Sequence record: OR699282.2
Direction: 5' to 3' (one strand)
Length of the DNA: 64,000 nt
Below are positions 43,813 to 52,497 of the stretch, in pieces (the first letter of the stretch is position 1; every line of letters begins with the position of its first letter). The notes under the pieces were generated by a model. It was not told the origin of the DNA and made no database searches. It saw nothing but the letters and a program-made list of their open reading frames with translations. The position numbers were made by a program, and so were the translations under genes.

Positions 43813-43853
43813 AAAGCTCGTCTATTGACGGGCTTTTCTTTTATGTGTATAAT
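43813..43853 (+). promoter_or_regulatory. terminator overlapping a sigma70 promoter
   Basis: AAGCTCGTC-TATT-GACGGGCTT plus T-rich tail; TTGACG(43825)-N17-TATAAT(43848). Confidence 0.75.
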
Positions 43854-43875: not shown

Positions 43876-45476
43876 ATGGTCAAAACTTTATTACCACCAC
43901 CAAAACGTCACAAAATCAAAGAAATGAAAGAACAACGTACATTAAAGATGTACAACAATTTAGTTAAGTTACTGTGTAAAAGTCCATCGCTCAAAGCAGA
44001 GTTTAAAACTGATGATGACCGTAAAGCACTAATTGAGATGAAATATATGCTCAGTAAAATGTCCTTTTACAAATTTGTAAAAGAATACGCATCTGACCCA
44101 TTTAGTCCTCGTTGGAGAGCCAAACCAAGAGAGTATTTTTACGGTGGTTCATATACAGATCGCATTCAAGACACAGTGATGGGAGTTGAATTTGAAATCG
44201 ATTATGAGCCGAATGGTGAGGAAATCTTGCAGATTGAGAAACGTTTACCAAGTGAAGAAGAAATTTATGTTTATGCAAGAAAACTTTCAACTTACAGTTC
44301 AAGAATTACTCTAGGCAATTTAGATTCATTAATTATTTTCTATACACGTGTTGGTGTAGATAAGATGGTAACTAAACTCAATGAACTTTCATTACAACAA
44401 AAACAGATTAATGCATACAAAGACATTACTGATTTATACTAATGAGGAATGGATATGTTTTTTGGATCAGTTGGAAAACAAAACAGTACTTTAATTTGGC
44501 ATGAAATTATCTTTAAAATTATATCTAAAAGCTACTCACTAAAGGATATTATCACCACAGATAATGATAGACGTATCCTGTTAGATGCAAAATATAAATT
44601 GAGCAAACACCCTTTACTTTCTTTAATCATTGATTACGTTAATGATTATGAATCTAGTCGTTGGAAGTGGGAAGACGGCGGTTTATTTCGTGGAAAAACA
44701 TTCTACGGTGCGGAACGATATGTTTTCAGTGATGCATCAAATGGCGTTAAGTTTGTTATTAGAAACTTTAACTCCAAAGAAAATGATTATCTTGAAAGTG
44801 GAGTGAAAGTATATATCGATAATAATAGCAATGTCCTAACATATGACGAATCACTAATTATGTTACAAATAATGCGTGGTGTTGAAGGTGTAAGAAACAA
44901 CCTTACTAAATTGAAAATCCAGCAAAATGATATACATAATAGACAGAAAATTAAGGGTTTATATAAATGATTTCATTTTTCAAAAAGAAACAAAAAGTTG
45001 ATGAAACAGGATTAGAATCGTTTCTATGGACTCTTATCATCAAAAAAAGTCCATTGATAAAAGAATATGCTATCAATGATGCTAATAGAAAAACTATCAT
45101 TGAATACAAATACGAATTATCAAAATGTGATCCAATCGTTTATCACTTTGCGAAGTACTGTTCAAAAAATTTATCGGATATCACAATAGACCATGAGTCA
45201 GTTCCAATGAGCTTTCCTTATGGTGATTGGGTAGATACTTTTGATATTTTTGATGGGTCCAATGGATTCAGTTTCTTTTACTCGTCAAATAAAGCAAATG
45301 TTCGTATTAAAACAGAGATAGGTTGGGCACAGCATAGCTCAAATAAAGAAGATTATAATTTACTAGCTGACGTATACCGAAGTGTGAAGAATTCAAAGGA
45401 TATTGATGAAAGAATTAAAAAGCAAAATCGTATTTCTTTATCACTTGAAACATACAAGTCAAAGTATGGTGGTTAA
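43876..45476 (+). other. three tandem paralogous CDS (43876, 44449, 44967)
   Basis: Shared KSxxxK...DxxR(K/R)x(L/I)xxxKYxLSK motif. Confidence 0.75.
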
Positions 45477-47186: not shown

Positions 47187-47814
47187 ATGGCACAACAAAT
47201 TTTCACAGATATCCACACTACCGGAGTTATTAAATTTCAAAATAATTTTTCAGGTGCAACTGGTGTAGACATTAAAAATGATGGTTTTAACATTGTCAGT
47301 ACTCGGATCTATTGATGGTGAAGATAGTTCTCTTAGTGATTCTGTGATTGCATCATTCGGAACTAATAAAAACAGTTCTTTTATTATATCTGGATGGACT
47401 GGAATGACTGATTCTGAAAATAATGTTAAGATAAAAGCTAAAGCTACTAACGAGAATCATGAAACAGAATGGGTAACATTATATGATAGTGCAAGTAATA
47501 AGTTATATAATGTATTAAGTTCTAATAATATTTTAATTAATCCACTGTCGGGTAATGCTGTTTTTAATATTAATTTATCTGATAGAAATACTACTATTTC
47601 GATTGGTGCGGCTCCTACTGAAGTTTATTCAATTACCATCCTATTAACACAACAAACAGGTTCAAACCTAGTTAATTGGGGTTCTAATGTTAAATGGTCA
47701 TATAACAGACCAGTTGTTCTTTCTTATGAAATTGGTGAAAAAGATATTATTTCATTAGAAACATATGATAAAGGAGTTACATGGTACGGTGCATTAATTA
47801 GAGCAGGAGTATGA
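47187..47814 (+). pseudogene. tail-associated protein split by an apparent +1 frameshift (47187-47315 / 47278-47814)
   Basis: First ORF has an AAGGA RBS and a fibre-like N-terminus; the second lacks an RBS and ends in a phage tail-type W..NVKW...P.LS...D...G.TWYG domain. Confidence 0.55.
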
Positions 47815-47815
47815 T

Positions 47816-50605
47816 ATGTTAAACAATAATATTGATAATATTGTACAACTTCTTTATGGGCATCACAAATTTATTGAAAGAAATACTGGTGATACAATAG
47901 ACCCAACAGTACAACATTATGTGGTGAATAATCAGGGTGTTTTGGCGAACAACCGTCATTTTATTAACTATTCTGCAATGGAAGGTCAACCAAACGGTGA
48001 CGGGACAACAGAAGGTCAAAGTCTATTAATTTTAGGATACATTTATGCGTATCTGGCAACAAATGATCCAATGTTTTTAGATAAAGCCAAATGGTACTGG
48101 GATGCATATCATCAGTACTTTTATGCTGGACGTGAATTACCAGATCCACCTACACCACTACAATGTAACTGGATAGTTAATGCCAAAGAACCTATATTGG
48201 CTAACTGGCCTTTAGCTGATGATGGATGGCCTACACATGGTGGTTTCAAGGGTGTAGAATTTACATTTACAAATGGACAATGTAAAATACCACATGGTGC
48301 ACCTTATTATGGTCAGTTCTTGGATAAAGTAACATTTGCATTCAAAGGTGCTTTAGCATGGAACCAAATAAATGCGTCAGTAAAAGCATTATTACCAGAT
48401 GGTAGTGTTGATTGGGATACACCAGGTGAACAATATGATGTTGACTGGATTATCGATTTCATGGGTAGAAAAATCGACTGGGATGGTAATATTTTAGCAG
48501 AAGGTTTTGACGAATCTGAAAAAGGAACTGTTCAATTAAAGAATACAACAATTAATGGTGTATATAAATTAAATTTTGCAAATCGTCAACCAGTAGAATA
48601 TGGTGGTGTGATAATTCAACGAAATGAAATGCAACACAACCGCCCACTTCATGTTCCAATTGATTTGGAATTTGCGGATAACGCATCAGATGCAGAATTG
48701 TGGTTTAGTGATGCTTCTTATTTGTTATATAAAATAACAAAAGAAAGAAAACATTATTTGGGTTGGAAATGTTCACTACTAACGTGTTATGCTTATGGTG
48801 ATATTGACTCCAGAGATAAATTTTTCAGACAAAGTACAATTGTAACCACACCATTCACTGATGGTATTTCCTATGAATATTTTTATCCAAGTGATGCTAT
48901 TGCTAAGTTTGGTAGAAATTCTCTAGGATATATTACTATCAGGCAAGACCAAAGTGCACAAAGTACAATGGAACAACAAGCTATTTGGTTCAGGGTCAAT
49001 GCTGATTCTAAATTACTTGTAGACTATGGTGGTGTATGTGATGATGGTAAGCCGTTATCATTTAAACCAGTACTGGAATTGTCAAAAACAAAAAATGACC
49101 ATGATGTTGTTCGTTATCGTTGTGGCTTACCGGAAAGTAAAGACCAAAATATCACACATTCATTAACACCTTTAAGTGCATTTGTTAGAGAAAAGAAAGC
49201 AGATGGTTCCCCTTATATAATTGCTGATAGTAGAATTGTTGTTCCTTATGGTGCAGCTACGTCCGAAATGATATATAGTACTGATATATTAGTTACACGC
49301 CGCGATACCATTAATCAGTTAGTTTGTGGTGAAGATGATGGTGCTGTTATTGGATTTTGGCTATTAGCAACAAATAAGTCTGAAGTTAAATCTTTTACCT
49401 ATCGTTCATATGAAGATGATTACAATATAAGAATTGTAGATGATAATGGTTGGAGATGGTGGTGGATGATTCCTGCAACACACGGGGAATGGACTACAAT
49501 CACACTAAGTCCCGATACATTACGTTTATCTGGGTATCAGCCAAATCATCCAAGTTCTGACCCAAGACCAGATGCACCAGTTTATAGTGAACTAGAAGAT
49601 ATTACTATTTTACCTGATACAACCCCAGTAGATGGTGTTACTGCAATAATTGATTGGTATTGTATTAATGACATTCCAGAATTATACACGGATGCTGACG
49701 GTGATGACTATACTATGACATTTTCAATAACAATTGCAGGTGAATCACCATATACTGCACAGTTAGGGGATTGTGTAATCAAAGATTATTTGTTAAACTC
49801 ATTGCATTACACACCAGGAACAATACCATTTTCTAACATCACTGACCCGTATGCGAACCAGTATTCAGGATGGCGTGGTTTACCGTATCCAGGTTATCAA
49901 TATCCTGTGATATATTGTTTTAAAGACCAGCCAGTAGATAACACACGCTTAGGAAACATGTTAAGCTTTATGAAAGATTCCCAAACATGGTTTACTCAAC
50001 AATTCGGTACTGTTGGTCCGTGTGCACAAGCATATGTTTGGAACCGCTGGGATAACTTAAAATATGGTGAACCAGATACATTTACTATGCTACATTGGGG
50101 TGATCAAGCATGGAGTGGGTATGAACCACGTGCGTTCTTTGGGGCTGCCAGAGCATGGCAAGAACTCGCAGAGAGAGGAATTGAACCACCAGCAGATCTT
50201 GTTGAATTTTGTGAGAATTGGATTCACTTTTTAATTCAATTTCAAAAAGATAATGATGGTCGTTCACCAACAATCTTCAATAAAGATGGCACAGTTGAAG
50301 GTCCAGATTGGGACTTTACAGGTCATATGTGTGGGTTGTGGTTAGCTGGGGCTTGTGCTGCTGGATTGGCTGGATGTAAAATAGAAGGTCTAACAACACT
50401 CGCTGATAACTTAGTTCTCGAACTTCAAAAGAATTATGTTATTGTAAATCCAGGTTCACCAATGAATGGTTCATGGAGTCCAGCAGTTAGAGAAGGTACT
50501 GATAATGGTATGTTTTTTGGTTTCTGGGCAGGTGAGATTATGCGTGGATTGGGATTATACTCAATGTACCGCTTAAACACACCAAATCGTTTCCGTGATT
50601 TATAA
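47816..50605 (+). CDS. GH8-like (alpha/alpha)6 glycoside hydrolase with inserted beta-sandwich domains, probably virion-associated
   Basis: TTEGQS and NASDAELW parallel the GH8 catalytic segments (BcsZ TSEGQS, SASDGDVW); CBM-like W-rich insert. Confidence 0.7.
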   Translation: MLNNNIDNIVQLLYGHHKFIERNTGDTIDPTVQHYVVNNQGVLANNRHFINYSAMEGQPNGDGTTEGQSLLILGYIYAYLATNDPMFLDKAKWYWDAYHQYFYAGRELPDPPTPLQCNWIVNAKEPILANWPLADDGWPTHGGFKGVEFTFTNGQCKIPHGAPYYGQFLDKVTFAFKGALAWNQINASVKALLPDGSVDWDTPGEQYDVDWIIDFMGRKIDWDGNILAEGFDESEKGTVQLKNTTINGVYKLNFANRQPVEYGGVIIQRNEMQHNRPLHVPIDLEFADNASDAELWFSDASYLLYKITKERKHYLGWKCSLLTCYAYGDIDSRDKFFRQSTIVTTPFTDGISYEYFYPSDAIAKFGRNSLGYITIRQDQSAQSTMEQQAIWFRVNADSKLLVDYGGVCDDGKPLSFKPVLELSKTKNDHDVVRYRCGLPESKDQNITHSLTPLSAFVREKKADGSPYIIADSRIVVPYGAATSEMIYSTDILVTRRDTINQLVCGEDDGAVIGFWLLATNKSEVKSFTYRSYEDDYNIRIVDDNGWRWWWMIPATHGEWTTITLSPDTLRLSGYQPNHPSSDPRPDAPVYSELEDITILPDTTPVDGVTAIIDWYCINDIPELYTDADGDDYTMTFSITIAGESPYTAQLGDCVIKDYLLNSLHYTPGTIPFSNITDPYANQYSGWRGLPYPGYQYPVIYCFKDQPVDNTRLGNMLSFMKDSQTWFTQQFGTVGPCAQAYVWNRWDNLKYGEPDTFTMLHWGDQAWSGYEPRAFFGAARAWQELAERGIEPPADLVEFCENWIHFLIQFQKDNDGRSPTIFNKDGTVEGPDWDFTGHMCGLWLAGACAAGLAGCKIEGLTTLADNLVLELQKNYVIVNPGSPMNGSWSPAVREGTDNGMFFGFWAGEIMRGLGLYSMYRLNTPNRFRDL

Positions 50606-50606
50606 C

Positions 50607-50667
50607 TTGACATAGAAAAAGTAATTATGTATAATCAGAGAACTTCATATGGAGTTCTCTTTTTTTA
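50607..50667 (+). promoter_or_regulatory. consensus sigma70 promoter overlapping an upstream terminator
   Basis: TTGACA(50607)-N17-TATAAT(50630); hairpin AGAGAACT...AGTTCTCT plus T run. Confidence 0.85.
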
Positions 50668-50679
50668 TAAGGTGATAAA

Positions 50680-51099
50680 ATGTTAAATGAACGTATTAAA
50701 AATGCACTACATGTATTGAACCAAGAAGTAAATTCTATTGATAAAAGTACTGACCGTTATAAAGTAATGCATGAAATCAAACAAGAATTGGAATCTATTA
50801 ATAAGGGAGAATGGTGGTATCTTCAGCCCGAATATCAAACTCGTGAATTAAACGATGTTGAAAAAGAAATTGTCAAATTCATCACTACTCGTTACTGTGA
50901 TACATCAGAGAATGATGTATCAGCGAACTTCAATCTTACTAAATTGGAAGTCGAAGAAAAATTCAATTTTGATTGGCTTGATTGGCTTGAAATGGTCATG
51001 GAACTAGAAGAAAAATTCAATGTTGAAGTTGATGAAAAGTTCGAGAATAATGAAACTAAGCTGTATGAACTAGCAGAACATATTCAAAAAATGCTGTAA
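50680..51099 (+). CDS. acyl carrier protein-like protein with Trp at the phosphopantetheine Ser position
   Basis: DWLDWLEMVMELEEKFNVEVDE versus ACP [23 protein letters not shown]. Confidence 0.8.
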   Translation: MLNERIKNALHVLNQEVNSIDKSTDRYKVMHEIKQELESINKGEWWYLQPEYQTRELNDVEKEIVKFITTRYCDTSENDVSANFNLTKLEVEEKFNFDWLDWLEMVMELEEKFNVEVDEKFENNETKLYELAEHIQKML

Positions 51100-51152: not shown

Positions 51153-51527
51153 ATGAGTATGTTAGAAATAATTGTTTCAAAAATTCTGATTCCATTTTGG
51201 AAACCAATTTCTTTTGTATTATTGATTGGCGGTTCAGCTTATGCTGGTTGGGAAGCTAATACTTATTACAGTGGCTATCAACAAAGCATAGAGCAACAAA
51301 TAGCTAAAAAAGTTGATACCGCCTTGGATAAAATGCAACAAGAAAATGCAAAAAATTACCTTGAAACGAAAAAAATCATGGAAGATAATGCTAAAGTTAT
51401 TGAAACAAAGGTTCCTTTTATTGTAGAACGTGAAGTTTATAAGAATGTATGTTTAGATGAAGATGGTGTAAAAGTACTGAATGAACTAAAACAAAATTCT
51501 CAAGCTGCGAGGAATAAATTCAAATGA
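51153..51527 (+). CDS. Rz: i-spanin (Rz-like)
   Basis: N-terminal TM, coiled coil, and C-terminal VY.NVCLDEDG. Confidence 0.75.
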   Translation: MSMLEIIVSKILIPFWKPISFVLLIGGSAYAGWEANTYYSGYQQSIEQQIAKKVDTALDKMQQENAKNYLETKKIMEDNAKVIETKVPFIVEREVYKNVCLDEDGVKVLNELKQNSQAARNKFK

Positions 51528-51832
51528 AAAAATTATTAGTTCCGTTTATTTCTTTTTTAATTATAAGTGGATGTGCCGAACAAGTAAAACTACAATCCCC
51601 TGCACCAATTAAACAAGAAATTCTGTTAGAAAGATGTGATGATGATACACCTCTACCACAAAAAATTATGATTGACAAAAATGGTTTTAAAGGTTATGAT
51701 GGTGCAGAAATTCTTAAAGTACTTACTCGTTGGGATGCAGTCTACAATGAATGTGCTTTAAAACACGACGCATTGATTAAAACTATTCGTGATTTACAAG
51801 GTAAAGATATTAAAATCAATATCAAGGAATAA
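51524..51832 (+). CDS. Rz1: o-spanin lipoprotein (Rz1-like)
   Basis: Lipobox ISG-C; Pro-containing; second Cys pair; overlaps the i-spanin end. Confidence 0.75.
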   Translation: MKKLLVPFISFLIISGCAEQVKLQSPAPIKQEILLERCDDDTPLPQKIMIDKNGFKGYDGAEILKVLTRWDAVYNECALKHDALIKTIRDLQGKDIKINIKE

Positions 51833-51833
51833 A

Positions 51834-52445
51834 ATGAACAAATATCATGTTTACTATACGACAAAATTATCACTTCTTGAAGAATTAAATCAACGAAGTA
51901 CTAAGATGAAACGCTACACTTTAAATGGTATTACTTTTCGATATTTCCCACAAAAAGTTCTTACTTTTGTTAAGAATCCAAAATGCGTGGCATGTGGGAT
52001 TGAAGCTACTGAAGTACGCATTGAACGTTCATTATGTTCTGATCCAGTATATGGTAAACCACATTTAAATGTATATGCTGTATGTGGTCTTTATGAAGTT
52101 TTAATGACAGTTGACCATAATCATCTGGCATCTAAGGGTGGACCTGATTTAGAGTCAAACTTTAATACTATGTGCTCCAGATGTAATCAACTACGTTCGA
52201 ATAAAACTGAAACAGTTGATGAGTTTCTTGAGAAAGTTAAAGGTCGTAATCTTCTCCAAGAACATATGAATAATTTCTTTAATGTACAAAAAAAGAAAAA
52301 TAACATTGACAAGTCGAAACTACTAGAAGAACGTAGGTTACGTCAAGAATTATGGGAAACTGATCATCTATGGCATGTTCGAGAGTTTGGTCGTCATATG
52401 AAAGCTTTGAAAAAAGAACAGAAGAAATTGAATAAACATGATTGA
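51834..52445 (+). CDS. HNH endonuclease
   Basis: CVACG, TVDH..LASKGG, N...MCSRCNQLR. Confidence 0.85.
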   Translation: MNKYHVYYTTKLSLLEELNQRSTKMKRYTLNGITFRYFPQKVLTFVKNPKCVACGIEATEVRIERSLCSDPVYGKPHLNVYAVCGLYEVLMTVDHNHLASKGGPDLESNFNTMCSRCNQLRSNKTETVDEFLEKVKGRNLLQEHMNNFFNVQKKKNNIDKSKLLEERRLRQELWETDHLWHVREFGRHMKALKKEQKKLNKHD

Positions 52446-52497
52446 TATGATATTATAGGGACTTGAGTATTCAAGTCCTTTTTTTTGGAGAAAATAA

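Follow-up and report, generated by a model that had tools for sequence, protein, structure and literature searches.

Introduction

Acyl carrier protein (ACP) ranks among the most connected bacterial proteins, and it offers in helix II a universal docking surface, on which D35, D38, E41 and E47 of the E. coli protein are the classic partner-recognition residues. ACPs also serve as accessory subunits, as for MukB and mitochondrial complex I. Some clients accept the protein in its unmodified form: apo- and holo-AcpP stimulate the MukB ATPase to an equal degree (Prince et al. 2021; PMC8602292), and apo-ACP inhibits the glycerol-3-phosphate acyltransferase PlsB as well as growth (Keating, Carey and Cronan 1995, as relayed in PMC3896788). 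Both effects are exerted by an ACP fold without a cofactor, through purely protein–protein contacts. Other clients are more demanding, as binding to IscS needs D35, D38 and Ser36 (PMC13343975), and SpoT is reported not to bind apo-ACP (PMC3896788).

Bacteriophages also encode proteins annotated as ACPs, and the location of such a gene beside the spanin genes has been remarked on in Eneladusvirus (PMC7760394). The literature we searched contained no paper discussing phage ACPs that lack the serine, and no description of a phage mimic exploiting the contacts of apo-ACP. Here, we analyzed a stretch of 64,000 nucleotides from sequence record OR699282.2 (the window), in which an initial annotation based on the letters alone had pointed to an ACP mimic with tryptophan in place of the invariant serine. 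We compared this gene with its orthologs, its genomic surroundings and the known ACP systems, and we argue that it encodes a docking protein rather than a carrier.

Results

An ACP homologue with tryptophan at the cofactor site

Over the analyzed region, identity is 100% to Escherichia phages JP4 and BAU.Micro_ELP-22 and 98–99% to PBECO4, 121Q and phAPEC6, which are jumbo myoviruses of ~350 kb belonging to the genus Asteriusvirus. The gene under study occupies positions 50680–51099 of the plus strand (ATG at 50680, TAA at 51097–51099), and a ribosome-binding site, AAGGTGA (50669–50675), can be read directly from the sequence 4 nt upstream of the start codon. Its product of 139 aa has no signal peptide and is 97–100% identical among PBECO4/121Q-type phages. 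It belongs to phrog_18343, which it matches over its full length (residues 2–139, E = 3.7e-61) and with which it shares the position upstream of a spanin pair; two phage “acyl carrier protein” PHROGs match at ~1e-6.

As a single sequence, the protein matches Pfam weakly (PF14573, 18.3 bits, below the 32-bit cut-off). A family profile built from 13 full-length (long-form) members, without any canonical ACP, matched solved ACPs of B. subtilis (E = 5e-10) and E. coli (E = 1.3e-8), and eight of the 13 members matched PF00550 (best E = 3.8e-7), so that significant homology to the carrier-protein family (PF00550/PF14573) was recovered at the profile level. The AlphaFold2 model (pLDDT 89, pTM 0.63) comprises two N-terminal helices (residues 4–18 and 23–41), a less confident linker and a four-helix domain. 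This ACP-fold domain spans residues 56–139 (50845–51096, plus strand), has a pI of 4.24 and includes helix II at residues 99–113. Carrier proteins made up all of the best 50 Foldseek matches and likewise all of the best 50 matches in an independent VIA-align search of 48,161 chains, with residues 54/56–139 covered (TM by target 0.70–0.78, Z up to 9.1). An ESM Atlas feature search returned only unnamed clusters and some PP-binding clusters. The protein is a homologue of bacterial ACP with an ACP fold. Profile homology, model and both structure searches agree in this with the initial annotation, which had proposed a C-terminal ACP fold including an acidic helix II and had made its reading depend on the predicted fold being ACP-like.

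In the family profile alignment, W99 falls on the cofactor serine, corresponding to Ser36 of E. coli ACP, and the conserved serine of the D-S-L motif of acyl carrier proteins is therefore replaced by tryptophan at the phosphopantetheine position. The codon (TGG, 50974–50976) lies in an exact tandem, GATTGGCTTGATTGGCTT, at 50971–50988 of the plus strand (GATTGGCTT ×2), which encodes D98-W99-L100-D101-W102-L103. The substitution and its location within a twofold repeat had been described in the initial annotation and are visible in both sequence and alignment. Because the serine of the DSL motif is tryptophan, the Trp-type protein, judging from its sequence, cannot be loaded with phosphopantetheine at the canonical site, as had been proposed.

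Compared with bacterial type II ACP (AcpP; PF00550), the phage protein shares the four-helix fold (profile homology with E = 5e-10 to 1e-8) and the acidic recognition helix II, which agrees with that of E. coli at 11 of 20 residues and contains the equivalents of D35, L37, D38, E41, M44, E47 and F50. It differs in the tryptophan at the DSL serine, in a single-sequence match below the Pfam cut-off, in an additional N-terminal hairpin of 55 aa that is predicted to dimerize, and in being phage-encoded without any fatty-acid or polyketide gene context.

Variation of the serine site among orthologs

We aligned 33 sequences of the family and inferred a maximum-likelihood tree, which at its midpoint root separates into two well-supported halves (100/99). 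The Mimasvirus/Eneladusvirus half has the serine of D-S-L-D in eight of eight sequences, its long branches notwithstanding. In the Asteriusvirus/Alcyoneusvirus-type half, the same site carries S in A4, ph0011, UE-S1 and several metagenomic sequences, T in the RaK2 group, N or R in the Turkey5 group and E, D or K in four metagenomic lineages. Tryptophan is confined to a monophyletic clade (support 97/96) composed of the window, 121Q, WPEC5, vB_Ec-M-J, TH47 and CMSTMSU. On a tree calculated without this column, at least seven changes are needed at the site, four of them between serine and non-serine; the serine site drifts freely, without constraint, in this half of the family.

The tryptophan is present in all near-identical variants in the protein database, and its codon is unchanged in a wastewater variant; it is therefore neither private to this genome nor a sequencing error, the outcome that would have undone the initial annotation. 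Scoring serine against tryptophan in phage homologs, which that annotation had proposed as a check, thus places the tryptophan as a fixed state of a supported clade. In relatives, the serine codon is TCA, from which TGG is two substitutions away, and the exact GATTGGCTT copy suggests that the codon may have arisen as a templated change from the adjacent D-W-L codons.

A second position behaves reciprocally. Trp102 is invariant in 14 of 14 representatives of the Ser-variable half, where position 99 is free, whereas in the Mimasvirus/Eneladusvirus half Ser99 is invariant and position 102 is M, T, E, Y, L or I. We read this reciprocal Ser99/Trp102 pattern in the alignment as a likely functional shift. 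Such a shift would have occurred at the base of the Asteriusvirus/Alcyoneusvirus-type clade and would have left the protein dependent on Trp102 but no longer on the serine. The serine was probably used in the ancestral form, whose function could involve the cofactor, since host AcpS may well load the Ser-bearing orthologs.

Selection and conservation of the docking surface

Serine loss was not accompanied by a relaxation of selection. Between the window and WPEC5, which represent the two branches of the Trp clade, dN/dS is 0.21 at a dS of 0.80 (0.29 for the ACP domain alone), so the gene remained under selection once the serine had gone. Pairs that retain the serine have similar ratios (e.g., 0.29 for A4 versus ph0011), dN/dS lies between 0.17 and 0.3 at dS up to 1.3, and the reading frame is intact in every genome read. 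The gene is under purifying selection.

The acidic docking helix II is the best-conserved part of the protein. Residues conserved in both halves of the tree are D98, D101, E104, M107, E110, F113 and E116 in or directly after helix II, and R26 and Y27 in the N-terminal hairpin. Among the 33 sequences, D98 and D101 are invariant and E104 and E110 are at least 90% conserved; these four residues correspond to D35, D38, E41 and E47 of E. coli ACP, and the acidic recognition surface is accordingly present in full. The invariant aspartates could, however, serve fold stability or an intramolecular contact instead of docking.

A family-wide N-terminal hairpin predicted to dimerize

The N-terminal extension of ~55 aa noted in the initial annotation is real and conserved across the whole family. 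It forms a helical hairpin in the AlphaFold2 model (residues 1–55; 50680–50844, plus strand), with A9, L10, E16, S23, R26 and Y27 as conserved residues, and it had no structural match of its own in the structure search. Homodimer prediction gave a score of 0.46, compared with 0.03 for the best control. In our calibration, 20 of 30 proteins with structures solved as pairs scored this high, as did 1 of 23 solved as single chains, counts that are only rough because the prediction used a custom alignment of 13 rows. The predicted interface is restricted to residues 1–46 of both copies, includes the clade-invariant A9, L10 and E16, and leaves the ACP heads free. According to these models, the hairpin is predicted to pair two copies and thereby display two free ACP-like heads.

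Distribution in RaK2-like jumbo phages

An exhaustive HMMER search of 1.84 billion representatives yielded only 22 proteins at E ≤ 1e-3, of which ten were full-length members and the others fragments or short canonical ACPs. All named members come from RaK2-like jumbo phages, with one copy per genome. They fall into Asteriusvirus, Alcyoneusvirus (RaK2, K64-1, Muenster), Mimasvirus (GAP32, CBB, XbC2) and Eneladusvirus (Serratia BF, Yersinia fHe-Yen9-04 and the Erwinia pEa_SNUABM phages), and a further member is found in Erwinia phage Kaldavass. The contigs that carry metagenomic members reach 350 kb, and a scan of IMG/VR returned 121Q only. Database names for these genes include “acyl carrier protein”, acpP, “carrier domain-containing protein” and “D-alanyl carrier protein 1”.

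The annotated ACPs of GAP32, CBB, XbC2, Serratia BF, fHe-Yen9-04 and the Erwinia Eneladusviruses (PMC7760394) are true orthologs of the protein studied here. They share its two-domain architecture and the slot immediately upstream of the spanin pair; unlike the window’s clade, they keep the DSLD serine (8/8) and lack the invariant Trp102. In the GAP32 record, the C-terminal ACP domain alone is annotated (255 bp), and a full ORF of 138 aa, including the conserved N-terminal hairpin, is open upstream of the annotated start. The ORF extends beyond the normal C-terminus in Salmonella phage SD-15_S21 (192 aa) and in CMSTMSU (142 aa), in both cases following a change near the last codons; these extensions probably reflect errors of assembly or sequencing, or else genuine frameshifts.

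A second group of serine-less phage ACPs is formed by proteins of ~107 aa (phrog_4154), which are named “acyl carrier protein” in 273 phage records, nearly all of them Ackermannviridae (Vi01-like). Their helix II is near-canonical, the serine is absent, and the site holds D or E in all four sequences read (IME250, Vi01, phiD3 and PhaxI), making it consistently acidic compared with the variable site of the RaK2-like family. A weak direct sequence match connects them to residues 85–139 of the window protein. Their N-terminal extension is a different one, and their gene follows that of a vWA-domain protein.

Gene neighborhood

In all 15 loci inspected, the ACP-like gene lies immediately 5′ of an i-spanin/o-spanin pair. 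In the window, the Rz-like i-spanin gene (51153–51527, plus strand; phrog_1152, E = 6.6e-29) is the next gene of the same predicted transcription unit and is followed on the same strand by an o-spanin-like lipoprotein (51524–51832) with a lipobox-like motif, SGC, whose counterparts in phages Muenster and XbC2 are annotated as o-spanin. The last gene of the unit encodes an HNH endonuclease-like protein of 203 aa with a pI of 9.4 (51834–52445, plus strand, from the ATG at 51834). An HNH gene fills the same post-spanin slot in Asteriusvirus, RaK2, Yersinia fHe-Yen9-04 and four metagenomic relatives, a stability that is unusual for a homing-type nuclease; it is missing at the GAP32, CBB, Serratia BF, Kaldavass and XbC2 loci.

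The genes around the ACP-like gene encode proteins of unknown function, an RlaP-type nucleotidyltransferase, tail fibers, spanins, the HNH protein and DUF7325, and none of these neighbors is an acyl-handling gene. We extended the search to 121Q, the nearest complete genome (348,532 bp), in which no match to a phosphopantetheinyl transferase (PPTase; PF01648) was found and in which the ACP-like gene itself is the only PP-binding match (12 bits).

Upstream, a tail-fiber module encoding proteins of 178 and 929 aa (47278–50605) separates the RlaP gene from the ACP-like gene in the window, A4 and Turkey5, whereas the two genes are direct neighbors, with RlaP upstream, in WPEC5 and ph0011. The module looks like a mosaic insertion or replacement. 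Further upstream of RlaP, three tandem paralogues of 188, 173 and 169 aa with no assigned function lie at 43876–45476; they belong to phrog_18641 and phrog_7868, which cross-match.

Transcription signals

A sigma-70-type promoter (TTGACA-17 nt-TATAAT; 50607–50635, plus strand) that agrees with the consensus at 12 of 12 positions precedes the gene and is the only perfect match within the 64 kb. Allowing up to one mismatch gives 14 sites where shuffling predicts 2.2, and 13 of these lie on the plus strand. Between promoter and ATG lies a feature absent from the initial annotation, a terminator-like hairpin (50637–50667, plus strand) with a 10-bp stem, a 4-nt loop and a subsequent T run. Such promoter-plus-hairpin units occupy short intergenic gaps at 43813–43853 and 52428–52480 as well as at 50607–50667.

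The hairpin at 50637–50667 would end the transcript of the upstream tail gene. Because the promoter precedes this hairpin, transcription would be expected to start ~7 nt past the −10 hexamer, within the hairpin’s 5′ arm, and the new transcript would thereby escape termination. It would then cover the ACP-like gene, both spanin genes and the HNH gene up to the end of the four-gene unit, where a second terminator-like hairpin, likewise with a T run, is located (52457–52480, plus strand).

A4, Turkey5 and ph0011 have kept the promoter-hairpin unit, which is missing in WPEC5, where the ACP-like gene starts 10 nt after the RlaP gene. The consensus sigma70 promoter ascribed to the gene in the initial annotation is thus perfect in the window, but it is not a feature of the family, since the Trp-bearing WPEC5 does without it. 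Four read sets, one probable DNA run and three wastewater metatranscriptomes, gave scattered contigs of low depth that spanned genes, the upstream tail gene among them, and offered no support for a transcription start or for expression of the ACP-like gene.

Discussion

A probable cofactor-independent docking protein

Taken together, we consider it reasonably likely that the gene encodes a cofactor-independent ACP-fold docking protein and not a carrier. The protein most likely acts by binding, and, as far as the structural models indicate, it probably does so as a dimer. We infer that the acidic helix II and a patch around Trp102, here joined by Trp99, would be laid onto a basic site of a partner that accepts an ACP without its cofactor. 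The protein would either compete with host ACP at such a client or be the accessory subunit of a phage protein. Our assessment is split roughly evenly between a host and a phage partner.

Candidate partners in host and phage

The first possibility, which we put forward tentatively, is a decoy of host ACP: an apo-ACP mimic that blocks or hijacks a host client such as PlsB (phospholipid synthesis) or MukBEF (chromosome organization). Continued mimicry predicts a helix II that stays close to the bacterial consensus, and this is what we observe in the 11 of 20 residues identical to E. coli and the retained equivalents of D35, D38, E41 and E47, although the core-facing residues of helix II would be conserved for folding in any ACP. 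Precedent comes from apo-ACP itself, whose inhibition of growth is attributed to PlsB in the account relayed in PMC3896788 and which is bound by MukB; in E. coli, however, apo-ACP is the host’s own protein, whereas here it would be phage-encoded. The consensus sigma-70 promoter of the window fits expression by the unmodified host polymerase, but in the WPEC5 branch the gene lacks its own promoter. The predicted dimer would increase avidity for oligomeric clients. Such avidity may matter, as host ACP is in huge excess, and its concentration of ~100 µM (PMC8602292) means that a competitor needs high affinity or high expression.

The choice of client is narrowed by the cofactor. Clients that require it, such as SpoT and IscS with its dependence on Ser36, are poor candidates, and clients that accept apo-ACP, such as PlsB and MukB, are better ones. 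This speaks against SpoT, one of the targets named in the initial annotation. AcpS, another of its targets, is unattractive by reasoning, because the pool of host holo-ACP is already present when infection begins.

The second possibility, which we hold just as tentatively, is that the protein is an accessory subunit or adaptor of a phage protein, with the basic HNH protein, lysis or rII-type proteins and an assembly factor as candidate partners. ACPs are structural subunits in many of the solved complexes among the structure-search matches, and the gene keeps a fixed slot in a collinear block of phage genes, in a predicted four-gene unit with the spanins and the HNH protein of pI 9.4. The spanins are periplasmic, and the ACP-like protein has no signal peptide; their synteny says little, because the whole region is collinear among related phages, and we regard a spanin partnership as unlikely. 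We also considered an immunity function, modelled on the colicin immunity proteins, in which an acidic four-helix protein guards a basic HNH nuclease; this idea sits poorly with the Mimasvirus loci, which keep the ACP-like gene without any HNH gene. The evidence from virions is mixed: the Ser-type Eneladusvirus ortholog was detected with low peptide counts in virion preparations, but the phAPEC6 ortholog (gp313c, 97% identical) is missing from the 62 virion proteins identified by mass spectrometry, so that a role as virion component is not supported for this close ortholog.

A more far-reaching version of the host-directed reading would be that RaK2-like jumbo phages and, independently, Ackermannviridae encode apo-ACP mimics that seize or shut down a cofactor-independent client (such as MukBEF or PlsB), with the invariant Trp102, at the +3 position, standing in for the arm in the jumbo-phage clade and the dimer adding avidity. 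We offer this as speculation and think it rather unlikely in this full form.

The role of tryptophan and the fate of the serine

It is improbable that Trp99 itself mimics the phosphopantetheine arm, as the initial annotation had suggested. Trp99 is fixed within its clade, and it stands one helical turn from Trp102 at the start of helix II, where the two would form an aromatic patch at the point from which the arm emerges. However, position 99 is S, T, N, R, E, D or K in sister lineages that share the slot and the conserved surface, and the invariant aromatic residue is Trp102. If any tryptophan stands in for the cofactor arm, the alignment therefore points to Trp102 rather than Trp99.

The repeated loss of the catalytic serine and the lack of a PPTase or other acyl-handling gene in 121Q might suggest that the gene is the decaying or neutral leftover of what was once a phage acyl carrier protein. 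Such a reading is very hard to reconcile with a frame intact in every genome read, dN/dS of 0.17–0.3 at dS up to 1.3, strongly conserved surface residues, and a strong ribosome-binding site and promoter.

Implications

The docking surface has been kept under selection and the cofactor site discarded, which points to an ACP fold used purely for binding. We therefore regard the cofactor-independent docking protein as an ACP fold that was probably turned into a cofactor-free and, according to the models, dimeric binding module of putative function. For the serine-less forms, labels such as “acyl carrier protein”, acpP and “D-alanyl carrier protein” are misleading, and this mislabelling apparently extends to the whole ACP family of the Ackermannviridae, a group that finds wide use in work on phage therapy. 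Should the partner be a phage protein, the RaK2-like family would supply a viral example of an ACP taken on as a structural subunit. Should it be a client of host ACP, the protein would represent a new strategy of host takeover and a natural probe of ACP-dependent regulation.
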